Assembly (NCBI GenBank): GCA_037447605.1
Contig: CM074808.1
Coordinates: forward strand, 992,001 to 1,056,000
From: Zygnema circumcarinatum SAG 698-1b
Lineage: Eukaryota; Plantae; Zygnematophyceae
DNA: 64,000 bases
Reading direction: 5' to 3'
Shown: positions 3,400 to 61,671 of the stretch, in pieces
Position numbering within the stretch: position 1 is the first letter of the stretch
How the letters are laid out: every line of letters begins with the position of its first letter
Notes under the pieces: generated by a model
Databases searched by the model: none
Seen by the model: only the letters and a program-made list of their open reading frames with translations
What the model was told of the DNA's origin: nothing
Program-made: the position numbers and the translations under genes

Positions 3400-5013
3400 G
3401 GCCATGCAAGGACCGCCTACGCGAGAAGGTACTGCACGAGTACGCGCACCACGGCCTCCCCCACAGCGCCGTGAATGTACCGCATGTTGGAGTGCACGCA
3501 GGAGTAGTGGAGGTCCTTGTTCTACACCCCGTGGTTGTTCTGATTCTTGCACGTGCCTAAATATCTCGCCGATTTTATAGGCCAAAAGTCCATGTATTCA
3601 ACGTCACCACGCTTTTCCATCAATCGCCTGCACACGAGTCGGAGTGAACCTACATCAAGGCTGTGCAAAAAAAGGGCAAAAGAAGGCGTTTCGCGTGTGG
3701 GTTCTGACAGAAATGCAGTGAAGTGAGCAGGCCTTCAACATCCTCCTCTCCCACCAGTCGCGTTAAGTCCCCCTTCAGAATGAAATACATGCAATACATA
3801 CGTAAAATAAAAAAAAAAGTCTGAGGGCCCCTCAACTTGTATATGTAGATCCGCCACTGTCTCCCACCTCCCCCCCCCCACTCCCCGTTCCTCTCTCTTT
3901 CTCGTCTTCATGGAGGCGAACAGCTCTGAGGGCTTGTCATTTGCTTTTTTTAAAGCTTCATTCAAATACTTTTCACTCGTTTACGCTGCGTTTTGGCAGA
4001 TAGGAACGATGCTGAATGGGCCGAAAGTCTCAAGAACAAAGAAAAAAGAAGAAAGAATACTTCTCGATGCTGAAGAGGTTTCAGGTTTACGATATCCACT
4101 ATGAGAATCTCATCATTCAAATGAATTTGCTCAAAATGTGATGCAATGGCAATATTTTTCGCGAACCAGAAAATCATGAACCTGGAACCAGGAACGAGGA
4201 ACTAGGAATCAGGAGACCGTTAAAAAAAGATTAAAGCTTAAATGCATCATAACATCTTCATATGAACGGCGGCCGGACAGCATATGTGAAGCATAAGGTC
4301 CACATACAGGAGGGGAGGAACTAGAGGAGAGCAAGAGAGAAAGAAAGAGAGAGAGAGAGAGGGGGAGAGAGAGATCGATAGAGAGCAAAAGGGAGCTAGA
4401 GAGAGAGAGAGCGAGAGCGAGAGAGAGCTAGAGAGAGAGCTAGATAGAGAGAAATACAGAGAGAGGGAGAGGGAGGAAGGGAGGGTAGAAGGCAGTGTGA
4501 GAGAAAGAAGAGCACACCTGCGATTCGAACGTGGTGTTCTAAGTCGTCGCCCCCCTCCCTCCAGCCCTCCGCCACCCCTTCCCAGCACTCCTCCTCTTTC
4601 TCCTCCAGCTCCTTCCTCCACCCTGATCCCTCCTTCCGCTCAAATCCCCGGAAGCCATGGCCTTCATTTGAACCGCCCCTCCGCTGTGAAGAACCAGAAG
4701 TGCGACTTTCCAAACTCCACGTGGCGGCGTGTAAAGCCTCGCCTTGGACAGGCGGGGGAGGGGCGCCACGTGGCACCTCCGTGGGAGCGCCAGGGAGCCT
4801 TCTGGTGTCGCTTCCGCGCAGGACAGGTGTCGCGGCGGCTGCCCAGGACCCGCCATGGCGGCGAGCGATGGAGAGGAGGAGAACAAGGGAGAGGAGGCGA
4901 GGAGGGATCCGGCAGCCATGGCCGGGCCCCGGGGAGGAGCCGGCAGGCACTTGGCGGAGGGAGACGAGGCGCCGAGTTGGTGATGTGTGGGAGCTTGCGG
5001 GGGGGGAAGCCAT
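3400..5013 (-). pseudogene. Probable disrupted multi-exon gene (type II membrane / SGNH-PC-esterase-like C-terminus)
   Basis: Candidate exon 1 at 5013-4518 (ATG in GCCATGG, hydrophobic stretch LLSLVLLLSIA, donor GCAG|GTGTGC). A distal segment at ~3620-3420 reads RLMEKRGDVEYMDFWPIKSARYLGTCKNQNNHGV*NKDLHYSCVHSNMRYIHGAVGEAVVRVLVQYLLA* with strongly GC3-biased codons but in-frame TAGs. The middle exons could not be joined in frame. Confidence 0.3.
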
Positions 5014-11745: not shown

Positions 11746-12482
11746 CCGTGACGTCACGGAGGTGGCGGAGTGGTTTGTCTGCCAGAGATTGATCCATGCT
11801 GACGTAACCACGCGACAGGACGTTTGTCATACTTATGGAAGGTTTAAAGGTAGCTTTTGAACTTTGTCGCTTTTGGAAATACTCTCCACGTGGCAGTCAA
11901 ACATTGGCTTGAAACAAACAACTTTGGACCATGACGTCAAGTTTTTCACTTTGCCACCAAAATGACAAACGAGTCACAGAACGACAATAGTCAAAATGAC
12001 AAAATGTCGTTGTTGCCAGGCAGCAACAAATGAGTAGCTGACGTCACCCTGTCGAGATCCGTCCGCTGCCAATCGCAGTTTCTCCACGTGGCAGGACCTC
12101 CTCGTCATTGGCACGTGCGAATCTCCCTCGCCACTTGCCACCCGCCCCCGCAGGACGCGGGCGGCCGCCACCTGGCCGTCCGGTCGCCACCTGGCCGTCC
12201 GGTCGCCACCGTCCGTACAGTTTCAACGGTCGTCGTTATCGTTGACTCACTGACGCGGCCCGCCGCCCGGGGCGTGTTCTGGAGCGCCCGTTGACCGCCA
12301 CGTGGTAGGACGTCCCCACGTGGTGGCCGCTTTCGTCCTCCGCCGACCCCAGCGCCAATTCGGGCAGCAACTGGGTTCCACGTGGCAGGCCGTACGGCCG
12401 ACCGAGCGCCCGGGCCGCCCAGCGGGCCGAGGACCGCCGCCGGCCGGCCAATCATTGGCCGCCCTCGCGGGCTTCGCACGTG
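11746..12482. promoter_or_regulatory. Dense cluster of ACGT-core bZIP/bHLH sites (7 G-boxes, 3 C-boxes) upstream of the pyrophosphatase-like gene
   Basis: CACGTG at 11887, 12085, 12112, 12299, 12317, 12379 and 12477 (five are CCACGTGG). TGACGTCA at ~11749 (inside the 14-bp palindrome CCGTGACGTCACGG), 11932 and 12039. Confidence 0.65.
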
Positions 12483-12776
12483 CGACGAATGCACGCGCAT
12501 CTGTTTGTCGCACGGGCCATGCGACGCCGTAACTGCGATGTCGCACACCCCCGTGCGACAAAAGGCAGGTGCGCGCGGCGGCGGCGCGCGGATCGCCGGC
12601 GGCTGAAGGCACGAGCGGGAGAGGGAGAGGGAGCGGGAGTGGGAGTGGGAGTGGGAGTGGGAGAGGGAGAGGGAGAGGGGGAAAGGGGGAGAGAGGGAGC
12701 AGGAGAGGGAGAGGGAGAGAGAGGGAGCGCGGAAGACCTTCTCCACGAAGGGATGTGTCCCTCTAAGTTTGAGGCC

Positions 12777-15755
12777 ATGGCTGCCACGAGCCTCCCTTCC
12801 ACTCTGCCTCCTGCATGCCGAGATCCCAATGCCCACATCCTCTGCCGCACGCAGCCTCCATGGAGCGTTGTCGAACACGGCACGGCCGGCCAAAAAGACC
12901 ACCGCCTGCTCCTCCTGGACGGCCAGGGCCGCCACGTGTCGCCCTGGCACGGCGTCTCCCTCTATGCCGCCTCCAACCTCGTCCACATGACCTGCAAGAC
13001 GCCACGTGGCAGCTCCGCAGCGTACGAAGTCGCCCCCGACGAGGAGCTCCAGCCCCTCCGTCCGCGCCGCTCGAACCCTAATTTCCGGCGCGCGTGTCCA
13101 TGGAACCTCGGCCTTTTGCCGCAGACGTGGGCCAGCGCCGCCGCGCAGGGCCATGGCGGCCTTCCGTACGACGGGCGGCCGCTGGAGGTGGTCGAGATCG
13201 GGCGGCGGACGGCGCAGAGAGGGCGGCCGTACGCCGTGCGCCTTCTGGGAACCTTCGCGCTCGTGGAGGAGGAGGGGCCAAGAATTTCCTGGAAGGTGCT
13301 CGCCATCGCCGTGGATGACGTCATGGCGGACAAGCTCCGCTCGGTGGAGAGTGTGAGTCGGGAGATGCCCGGAACGCTCGAACACGTGCGGGAGTGGCTT
13401 CGCACGTGCGAGTGCTTGGGACCTGGTAAGGCTTTCGAATGAATTAGAGTTGTCTTGGTTAAGAAAAAAGGAAAAGTTTCATAAGTGTTTTTTGTAAGAT
13501 TTTTGGTTTATGGGTTTTGGTGGAGTTTAAAGTGGTTAAAGTGGCTGATTTTTGTAAGTTTGGGGAGGAGGGAATGTTCAGGTGACAAGTTCCGGAAATT
13601 TGGGTTCAACGAGCGCGCAGTTGAAGGGCAAATTTTGTCCACTCTCGTTTCGCAGACGCACACGTCGTGGCACGCTCTCCCACACCACCGGAAACCTCTC
13701 TCTCCCACTTCCCTCTCTCCCACTTATCTCTCTTCCACTTCTCTCTCTCCCACTTACCTCTCGTCCACTTCTCTCTCTCCCTCGTCTCCCTCTCCCTCTC
13801 CTCTCCCTCCCTCTCCTCTTCCTCCCGCTGTGGCGTACACAGAAGCGTGGAACGCCCAAAAATTGCATCTCAAGAAGCACCCAGCTGTGCCCCTATCTCC
13901 CTCCTCGACAGAAGCTGCTCACACAAATTTTCCTAAACAGAAAAAAGAGGCAGAGTGTGGCTCTACCATAGTGAGAGAAAACAACATAATGTTGGGAGGA
14001 GCGGAGTCGGGAAACTCCACTCCAGGGCGGGAAGAGCGACTACGGTGGCCTGCATTCTTCAGAGTGCATGTGAACTCTGTTACTGAGTTAAAACTGAACA
14101 CGGAGATTGGAGCAGACGCAGCTGGGAGGCAGAGAAACCACGAGAAGAATGGCGAGAGTTTCTCCTTTATGAGGAAGGTGTTCAAGTTGCCCTTCAGATT
14201 GGGCCGATCAGCGGGAGATAGAGGAGGTAGGACGAGTGGTCCTGTAGGAGGGCGCATATTGAGAGCATCTTCTGTGCCAGAGAAGGTGCTCCAAGGGATC
14301 AGCCATGGCTTCCAGGAGGCGGATTTGGGGGCATTTCGGCGATGGAATTCAGATGATGACAACTTGAGAAGTTCGATGTCGAAGGGGAGGAGGCGATCCT
14401 TGAGTGCACTGTCGCCTCCGAGTAGCTTAGAGGGGGATAGTTTGGAGGAGAGCAAGGGAGAAAGTCTGAAGGAAAGCAGAGAGGACGAGGTTGGGGGGGG
14501 TGCTGAAGTGAGGGAGGAGGAGAGGGATGGAGATGGGGGGCTCATGGAGAAGGAAAAGTCACTGAAAGTGACGGAGGACATGGCTATGGCTATGGATTCT
14601 TTTTCAACTTTGGGCGTTGAAGAAACTAGCGGAAACCACGTACCTTCTCTCAGTGGCTCTGATCAGTTCGTGAGAGTGAAAGAATCTCCTTCTATTGCGA
14701 GTTCGGAGGAAAGAAACTCGTCCTCTGAGAGCCTGGAAGGTTCATCCATGGCGGCAGATAGAAGCAGCAAAGAATCGGAGAAGGAGAAGGAAGAGAGCCA
14801 TGTGGAGGCTGAACTCCCTACGGAGGTAGAGGAGGATCTGGTCTTAGACGACGAGATTCCGATAGCGAGAGTGGTAGAGGGTGACTTTCCCCCTCCGCCT
14901 CCCCCTCCCTTTGACTCAAAGGGCCCAAAGGGCGGCCGCCAGGTCTCCTTCAACAACATCGTCCAAGTGTTGACCTTCAATCCTTCTCACGAGGAAATTC
15001 CCTTAGCGGCTCCGGTCACCTCGACGGCACCTCCATCCATTATTCCCTTTCCAAGGGCCGGCGGAGAGAGCAAAGAGAACAATATGAGGAAGCCGAAGGT
15101 GAACGAGAAAAGCTTCGGAGGAGGTCCCACTCATTTCCCTTCCTCGTGGCCTCCTGCTGCTGCTTCGGCGGCGAAGGGGCACCCTCACAAAGGCCATATC
15201 GTGCTGATGAGCCGCAACGGAGCTCCGCAGAGAGTGGGGGGGGGAGGGAAGACATGGACCCAAGAAGGGTTTTTGCCGCCGAAGCCACCGATACCTCCAA
15301 AGGCTCAGGAGTTTCCACGAGCGAGTTCGCCTCGGTCGAGTCTAAGTCCCACAAACGTGCCCTCGGGGGAGAGTCTGCTATGGAAGCAGATGCAAGGGCA
15401 GGGGCAGTTTTCAGGGCAGGCGAAGCCCAGGCTCTCTCCAAGAGGGATTGACAGCGGCAGCCGCAAGCTCGTGATAAAGACAGCCTTGAAGAGGGCGGAA
15501 GGGGGGTTGGGTTTTCAGGGGGCGAGCGATATTGGGTGGGTGGAGGAGAGGCCCTCCCTAGGCTTGCTGCCGTTTGTGGAGGATTCGGACCTGTACTCGT
15601 GCTCCGCCAGCGAGGAGAGCTCGCCGAGGTCGCCGGAATCCCCCAGTCCCTTGACCCTTTCACCGAGAAATTCCTCACACGGAATGGCGGCCGTGCATCC
15701 CATCGCTTTTGCCGCTGTTTCGGGCTTTGCCCTGCCTGGAATGGCTGGCTTGTAG
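12777..15755 (+). CDS. Family I soluble inorganic pyrophosphatase-like (PPa6-type fold, catalytic residues degenerate) fused to a ~690-aa Ser/Glu/Pro-rich disordered tail; ~940 aa
   Basis: Exon 1 at 12777-13425 (alternative ATG 12753) encodes DGQGRHVSPWH...WNLGLLPQTW...VVEIG...WKVLAIAVDD...PGTLEHVREWLR. The GT-AG intron 13426-13581 joins G+GT in frame to exon 2 (13582-15755). Exon 2 begins with the PPase C-terminal part (GDKFRKFGFNERA...QTHTSWHAL) and stays open to TAG. Confidence 0.85.
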
Positions 15756-60933: not shown

Positions 60934-61671
60934 GGCTGTCTGTCTGCCCGCGGCGCAGTTAGGGCTAAGGGCCGCCCTCACTCGCTACTCCCCTCCCCCT
61001 CCCCTTCTTCCGCGGGGGAGGGCCGCCCTCCGTACGTCATTCGTACACCCTTCATACGGTTTTCGTACGGAACTCAGGCGTTCTCCAATGGATGTACGCC
61101 ACGTGGACATAAGATCCCTCCAAGCACCTCTCTGAAGCCGACTGTTAACGGCCTGTCACACAGTAACAGGATTTGGAACTGTGACAGAACAGTGACCATG
61201 GAAACCGTCAATTTAAGCTCAAAATTTAACAGCTGGAACAATACCCAAAAGTGTTCTCCACGGTCAGTTTCACAGCACTGGATGTTGTCATCTACTGCCG
61301 TACGATTTTGGCAGTTTGCCTGAAGCCAACAGCTTCCCTCACAGTGCCCCACGTGGCGCGCAATGATCACCGCCGCCGCCCCCCCGCCGTCCGATCTGGC
61401 CGGTTGCTGCCTTGCCGTACGAACGGTTTGTCCGTTACCGGTTCGCGCCCGCCCGCCCTCCTGGCGCCACCCGCCACGGCGGCGGGGACGAGACCGCCAC
61501 GTGGCGACGTTACCGGTCAAGTAACGGCTCGCGCGTGCGAGTCTAAATTTACATTTGGACCCTTTTTTTTAAGGAAAGATATTTACATTTGGAGCCTTTT
61601 TTTAAAGGAAAGATATTTCTATTTTGGTCCCAGCGAGGTCTCGTGGGAGGGGTCGGTCGCGGTCAGTCAGG

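Follow-up and report, generated by a model that had tools for sequence, protein, structure and literature searches.

Why would an alga keep a gene whose product retains the fold of a soluble inorganic pyrophosphatase (PPase) when most of the residues on which such an enzyme depends have been replaced? The question is raised by a gene on the forward strand, at positions 12777 to 15755 of a 64,000-nucleotide stretch (the window) from Zygnema circumcarinatum SAG 698-1b (contig CM074808.1, positions 992,001 to 1,056,000); all features given below lie on that strand and are numbered from the first letter of the window. Soluble PPases are among the most conserved housekeeping enzymes, and we found no report of a naturally dead version held under selection, nor any description in the literature of a natural dead family I PPase from any organism. 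Our analyses indicate with high confidence that the gene encodes a pseudoenzyme that has been maintained and that belongs to an undescribed family. The best reading of the whole protein, which we hold with moderate confidence, is that a pseudoenzyme head has been placed on a scaffold that recruits protein phosphatase 1 (PP1).

The predicted gene has two exons. Exon 1 (12777–13425; 216 codons plus the first base of a Gly codon) is an open reading frame (ORF) that encodes a 27-residue N-terminal lead and most of the PPase-like head, with an in-frame ATG at 12753 as an alternative start. It is followed by a phase-1 GT..AG intron of 156 nt (13426–13581; 35% GC) and by exon 2 (13582–15755; stop codon at 15753–15755), which encodes the end of the head and a long tail. 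The frame of exon 2 is open for 724 codons, whereas the other two frames hold 34 and 20 stops, and the predicted spliced product has about 940 residues (216 + 1 + 723 codons). The exons were searched and folded as separate pieces and not as the spliced protein. A preliminary description of this locus, made from the sequence without database searches, had called the intron canonical and the domain nearly intron-free, and both statements hold: the single GT..AG intron is real, and two relatives (L003 and L004, discussed below) have the same two-exon layout.

The PPase fold of the head was recovered by both sequence and structure comparisons. Exon 1 matched Pfam PF00719 at 58.3 bits (cut-off 23.5; E=1e-15) and 26 PPases in the Protein Data Bank (PDB) at E<=1e-3, the best of which was human PPA1 (6c45; E=1e-26), with a weaker match to the Thermus PPase (E=2.5e-4). 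Sequence identity of the head to eukaryote-type PPases was 28–32%. The scaffold motifs that the preliminary description had listed (VSPWH, GLLPQTW, VVEIG, WKVLAI..DD and PGTL..VREW) are all present in the translation of 12777–13424, and the structure model that it had proposed as a check is indeed a PPase fold. Specifically, the AlphaFold model of exon 1, folded with an alignment, reached a predicted local distance difference test (pLDDT) score of 90.2 and a predicted template modelling (TM) score of 0.85, and Foldseek aligned it with 6c45_A at E=3.6e-19 (TM 0.80, root-mean-square deviation 2.0 over 192 columns).

The head extends further into exon 2 than had been thought. The domain end had been placed at 13680, but 13599–13679 encodes only the last canonical PPase helix (FGFNER...THTSWHAL), which aligns to 17 family members and to canonical enzymes; it falls within the first 32 residues of exon 2, which align with the C-terminal helix of those 17 members. 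After a repeat insertion the fold reaches ~13910, as judged by homology with the model of a Closterium relative (P0004), and the C-terminal wrap of the fold (13833–13907) comprises AYTEAW (13833–13850) and AVPLSPSS, counterparts of the YExxW and PLSxP motifs of the family. The Closterium model is ordered to ~residue 325, with the wrap segment at pLDDT 84–94, and spans yeast residues 1–281 and human residues 4–285 with a Z-score of about 30, compared with about 19–21 for prokaryote-type PPases and plant cytosolic PPA1. Because of this difference (~30 vs. ~21), we take the family to descend from a eukaryote-type enzyme, with the C-terminal wrap kept. On these models, the head takes up some 330 residues from the N-terminus and has the eukaryote-type family I PPase fold in full. 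The earlier label of 'plastid-type' stands only as far as eukaryote-type, to which the plastid PPa6/IPY1 of plants and algae also belong.

Active-site residues were matched in two ways, by aligning the Zygnema head with human PPA1 in HMMER and by a 161-row MAFFT alignment of the head with 160 domains, which came from the best 150 proteins of the full HMMER scan described below. The catalytic set comprised 13 residues (yeast numbering: E48, K56, E58, R78, Y93, D115, D117, D120, D147, D152, K154, Y192 and K193). Across 72 canonical domains, no variation is seen at 12 of these columns (E, K, E, Y, D, D, D, D, D, K, Y, K), and R occupies the R78 column in 90%. At those 12 columns the residues of the Zygnema head are K, A, E, L, D, R, E, E, S, K, C, E. 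Only E58 (E84), D115 (D132) and K154 (K173) are retained, and 10 of the 13 residues are replaced. The replacements are E48 to K74 (codon AAG at 12996–12998, in the motif C-K-T-P, at a column that is E in 100% of the canonical domains), K56 to A82, Y93 to L111, D117 to R134, D120 to E137, D147 to E164, D152 to S171, Y192 to C211 and K193 to E212, of which those at D120 and D147 are conservative D-to-E swaps. All nine had been listed in the preliminary description and are confirmed by both alignments; the list was incomplete, however, as R78 is also lost in the family-wide alignment, where P101 occupies its column (the pairwise alignment with human PPA1 is ambiguous here and pairs R104 with R78 across an 8-residue gap).

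The metal-binding signature illustrates the extent of the change. D-G-R-P-L-E (13170–13187) stands for D-x-D-P-x-D, with D115 kept, D117 changed to R and D120 to E, so that the head has no match to what we take to be the PROSITE PPase signature. The side chains that hold phosphate are presumably K56, R78, Y192 and K193, and all four are replaced. Judged from these residues, the head has very probably lost productive binding of Mg2+ and PPi, and its PPase activity would be gone. We also observed that a C-x-C (13407–13415; residues 211–213) replaces Y192-K193 in 20 of 65 heads and that 95% of the heads have a Cys before the E48 column. A conserved C-x-C as a new metal site was considered and dropped, since no more than those 20 heads carry it.

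The degenerate site is shared by many other proteins. An exhaustive HMMER scan of 1.84 billion representative proteins with exon 1 gave 1255 matches, the best 40–48% identical and with protein lengths of 217–2052 residues. Among the best 150 representatives, ~67 share the degenerate site, corresponding to 67 or more protein clusters. In a maximum-likelihood tree, built by a quick search with support from the Shimodaira–Hasegawa-like approximate likelihood ratio test (SH-aLRT) and no full bootstrap, 67 degenerate domains including that of Zygnema form one clade (SH-aLRT 99; stem branch 0.46), and the canonical domains fall outside it. The relatives in other algae that the preliminary description had proposed to seek were found, with the same degenerate site: all named members belong to Mesotaenium or Closterium, namely four genes of Mesotaenium endlicherianum (ME000420S07042, ME000124S00201, ME000565S08349 and ME000191S02480) and five Closterium proteins from four strains. 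Many of the others are Trinity transcripts (EukProt) or anonymous contigs (Logan/ENA). One member from a Joint Genome Institute (JGI) metagenome is labelled 'inorganic pyrophosphatase', and labels of this kind would make PPi-hydrolysing enzymes seem more numerous than they are. No land-plant or chlorophyte name occurs among the family members, most of which carry no taxon label.

Exon 1 shares at least two five-residue words with 47 family members, a word search with the head of one further member (P0058) matched unnamed Trinity transcripts only, and a Pfam scan of six full-length members detected PF00719 alone. A search of the ESM Atlas returned canonical PPase clusters only. The word-index searches with exon 1 and exon 2 gave no matches, which is not evidence of absence considering that the full HMMER scan found the family. 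To us, the Zygnema protein is very likely one paralogue of a large undescribed family with a single origin in an active eukaryote-type PPase.

Tandem arrangements of PPase-like domains were also seen. Protein P0001 (NCBI source; 18.7-kb contig) has 5113 residues and 19 PPase-like stretches with degenerate catalytic columns (e.g., K,K,E,S,I,D,Q,E,S,S,K); on this evidence it would be a very large array of dead PPase domains in tandem. Four other proteins (P0013, P0026, P0034 and P0102) hold 2–4 tandem PPase domains in which 10–11 of 12 catalytic residues are kept and Y192 is changed to L or F; they form their own long-branched clade and look like polyproteins of near-intact PPases.

Several lines of evidence indicate that the dead head is maintained. 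Conservation in the family reaches 80% or more at 36 columns, and the Zygnema head matches 32 of them, a share (0.89) that equals the median for the family; the family-specific conserved residues are also present in it (the C before the E48 column, K/T-T-P-x-G, Y152 and W-L-R). Its phase-1 intron lies at the same codon and in the same phase in L003 and L004, which come from other samples and likewise have an N-terminal head, an intron after the ..C-x-C..P codon and a single long tail exon. Several of the short family representatives called on genomic contigs stop just past this intron point. The gene of Closterium sp. Yama58-4 (L005:3001-4200) has its first 400 residues in one exon and no phase-1 intron; the intron shared by Zygnema, L003 and L004 is lost or was never gained there.

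Since the nearest relative of the Zygnema gene is only about 40–48% identical, selection was measured on a Closterium pair (Yama58-4 vs. Naga37s-1; L005 and L006). Over the 325-codon head, 52 synonymous and 4 non-synonymous differences were counted (dS 0.27, dN 0.005), which gives a ratio of non-synonymous to synonymous rates (dN/dS) of 0.02 (p=2e-28), with 0.006 in the core fold; the next 75 codons gave 0.77, from only nine differences. The value for the head indicates strong purifying selection on the dead domain, at least in the Closterium lineage. The dN/dS comparison suggested in the preliminary description therefore speaks for purifying selection, as a value obtained from relatives and not from the Zygnema gene itself. 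Together with the monophyletic, multi-species family and the median residue retention, it bears out the earlier proposal of a catalytically dead but maintained fold.

What, then, is the head kept for? Within the family, the columns of the old site are variable (K/T/L at E48; R/E/K at K56; L/I/V at Y93; R/S/G at D117; S/A/T at D152), the D115 column is D in only 50% and the Y192 column is C in 53%. Conservation is found instead at fold-core and family-specific positions, such as the Cys before the E48 column, T75, G78, Y152 and L208, which are 83–95% conserved. This pattern of variable catalytic columns and a conserved core argues against a new ligand site in the pocket and suggests instead that the fold and its surface are what has been retained. 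The dead head may thus serve as a folded module for interaction or targeting, kept on account of its shape and surface. Of the two roles that the preliminary description had offered, ligand-binding or scaffolding, the latter is favored by the conserved fold core and by motifs in the tail, and the former is disfavored by the variability of the old phosphate and metal columns.

The tail spans ~600 residues, is rich in S, G, E and P, and contains no Pfam domain. We propose that this disordered tail carries short linear motifs, of which the best supported is of the RVxF type and would dock the catalytic subunit of PP1. The motif, RQVSF (tail residues 452–456), is followed by a downstream hydrophobic pair (RQVSF-NNI-VQV-LTF; 14937–14978). 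It fits the published PP1 docking consensus, K/R-K/R-V/I-x-F/W (PMC12109034), and lies in a disordered stretch with basic flanks, where V-x-V and F come after it. When the Zygnema tail was compared with that of its nearest relative, L004 (1001 residues), the best local alignment paired RQVSFNNIVQVLTFNPS with RHVSFRDLVEVLTFDSS; the counterpart of the RVxF island in the relative is RHVSFRDLVEVLTF, and this is the only tail island common to both. The island is also the second-best local match between the Zygnema tail and that of a Mesotaenium member (P0018).

Motif statistics were computed with patterns chosen after examples had been seen, and the enrichments should be read accordingly. A loose pattern of RVxF plus the hydrophobic pair occurred in 8 of 46 tails, compared with 0.54 in shuffles (maximum 4 in 300), an enrichment of ~15x, and the members that bear it are spread over at least five subclades of the head tree. 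A second motif, 'RPAFF' (RLRWPAFFRVHV; 14037–14072), consists of a basic stretch followed by P-A-F-F and was found in 7 of 42 tails (0.15 in shuffles); it recurs in the tails of Closterium members and of unnamed transcript members. To our knowledge, it has no known partner. The YExxW pattern occurred in 21 of 42 tails (2.1 in shuffles), and the AYTEAW of Zygnema is a partial form of it that the pattern does not score.

With PP1 docked, the protein would act as a scaffold that regulates or targets the phosphatase. That it actually works in this way, with the head giving targeting or substrate choice, is a tentative proposal built on sequence motifs. Three points weigh against our preferred reading. 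The RVxF motif is short and degenerate and was found in just 8 of 46 tails, so that PP1 docking may be confined to a subfamily. The retained E58, D115 and K154, together with the D120E and D147E changes, leave the pocket some acidic and basic character, and weak binding of metals or anions is possible. Finally, the Zygnema protein itself was not found in the searched collections by exact look-up of the exon 1 ORF or by the word and HMMER searches.

The tail could also be a disordered hub for partners other than PP1, with the RVxF-like match binding something else. This is a rather unlikely account, which would suit the small share of tails with the motif and the existence of other conserved motifs without a known partner (RPAFF). 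It has to be set against the fit of the motif to the published consensus (PMC12109034), its position as the single conserved island between otherwise unalignable tails, and its ~15x enrichment over shuffles. A small-molecule sensor, in which the dead head binds PPi, polyphosphate, inositol pyrophosphate or a phosphopeptide in the old active site without hydrolysis, would explain why the pocket-forming fold is intact, and would be consistent with the retained K154, E58 and D115 and with the basic residues at E48 (K) and D117 (R) in Zygnema. We regard it as unlikely, given that the phosphate-contacting K56, R78, Y93, Y192 and K193 are all replaced and that every column of the old active site varies across the family, where a conserved ligand site should show conserved contacts. 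Pseudoenzymes often pair with their own active paralogues, and the head might similarly pair with or regulate the active soluble PPase of the alga, e.g., in a heteromer that tethers or inhibits the active enzyme. The origin of the family from an active eukaryote-type PPase, the retention of the whole fold including the C-terminal wrap, and the homodimeric state of the yeast and animal eukaryote-type enzymes would all be in line with such pairing. However, the contacts of the yeast dimer, which we assume to include W52 and the H87 loop, do not appear to be preserved: the W52 column is G in 91% of the family, and the loop after R78 is shorter by about 5 residues in the family and by 8 in Zygnema. 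A PPase partner therefore appears improbable.

Active-site variants of yeast PPase have strongly lowered activity. It is very unlikely that the Zygnema head still catalyses slow PPi hydrolysis, or another phosphoryl transfer, through its remaining acidic residues. D115, E58, K154 and the two conservative D-to-E changes are what such catalysis could draw on, but among the 10 of 13 residues replaced are D117 (now R) and D152 (now S) of the metal cluster, together with every basic or aromatic residue that binds phosphate; for the yeast enzyme, even single conservative changes at these positions were solved as 'active site variants' (PDB titles). Lastly, the Zygnema copy could be a decaying pseudogene that is still open by chance. 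Exon 1 is GC-rich, with a GC content at third codon positions (GC3) of 0.81, and has just 2 stops in each of its other two frames, so that its open frame alone is weak evidence of coding. Yet the 724 open codons of exon 2 contrast with many stops in its alternative frames, both splice sites are intact, the intron is common to L003 and L004, conserved residues are kept at the family median (32/36), the tail motifs are intact, and a coding repeat with a period of 15 nt preserves the frame. We consider decay extremely unlikely.

A pseudoenzyme head on a PP1-recruiting scaffold remains, in our judgement, the reading that these observations favor. The dead fold heads dozens of divergent proteins, many of them known as transcripts, and all named members are from the Zygnematophyceae, the algae closest to land plants. 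If their tails dock PP1, these proteins would form a set of PP1 regulators that had escaped notice, in which a metabolic enzyme fold is reused as a signalling scaffold. A broader view, possible but doubtful, is that the family constitutes lineage-specific PP1 regulatory subunits from the algal sister group of land plants, in which the dead head specifies substrate or location. A housekeeping fold would then have been recruited wholesale and multiplied into paralogues, diversifying PP1 signalling.

Turning to the locus itself, base composition changes steeply inside the one gene (12777–15755), from a GC3 of 0.81 in exon 1 through an intron of 35% GC to a GC3 of 0.60 in exon 2, and the window surrounding it is mostly 46–50% GC. 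Octamers resembling the G-box or abscisic acid (ABA)-responsive element (ABRE) are frequent: CACGTGGC has 21 copies in the window (1.7 expected) and CCACGTGG has 14 (0.8 expected). Five are clustered within 900 bp upstream of the ATG of the gene (11886–12385), and further clusters (4717–4773, 20524, 33614 and 61099–61504) lie in the apparent promoters of other genes. Such clusters suggest control by factors of the basic leucine zipper (bZIP) or basic helix-loop-helix (bHLH) type, in a light-dependent or ABA-like manner.

Two repeats were also noted at this locus. Within exon 2, a CT-rich 15-nt in-frame repeat of seven copies (13681–13829) encodes an S/P/L/T-rich loop insertion before the C-terminal wrap. 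The second, a purine-rich (GGGAGN)n tract a short way before the ATG (12601–12750), is the inverse complement of this pyrimidine-rich repeat, the arms being ~70% complementary and ~1.1 kb apart. A second intron that would excise the CT-rich repeat was considered and rejected, as the GTs there are out of phase with the candidate acceptor at 13842; reading the sequence by eye, we found no in-frame GT..AG pair able to splice out 13681–13829. An inverted match of 26 nt, which pairs 13063–13088 with 13592–13617, was weighed as a possible relic of template switching and likewise rejected because 8 of 60 shuffles equalled it under ungapped scoring.

Compared with known systems, the Zygnema protein combines features that are otherwise found apart. 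We know of no PP1 regulator with a PPase-fold head. With the eukaryote-type family I PPases (yeast IPP1, human PPA1) it has the whole fold in common, including the N-terminal strands and the C-terminal wrap; it differs from them in the 10 of 13 catalytic residues replaced, in the shortened loop after R78 and in the added disordered tail of ~600 residues, and PPi hydrolysis is not expected of it. The prokaryote-type PPases (E. coli PPase, Arabidopsis cytosolic PPA1) are more distant, with the same beta-barrel core but without the eukaryote-type extensions that the Zygnema head keeps. Like the RVxF interactors of PP1 (e.g., Inhibitor-2, KNL1 and GADD34; consensus in PMC12109034), the protein carries its motif in a disordered region, but in its family the motif is restricted to a subset of members, and PP1 binding by the Zygnema protein is a prediction. 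A further parallel is offered by the pseudokinases and pseudophosphatases on signalling scaffolds, in which, as in the Closterium relative, an enzyme fold is held under purifying selection after catalysis has been lost.

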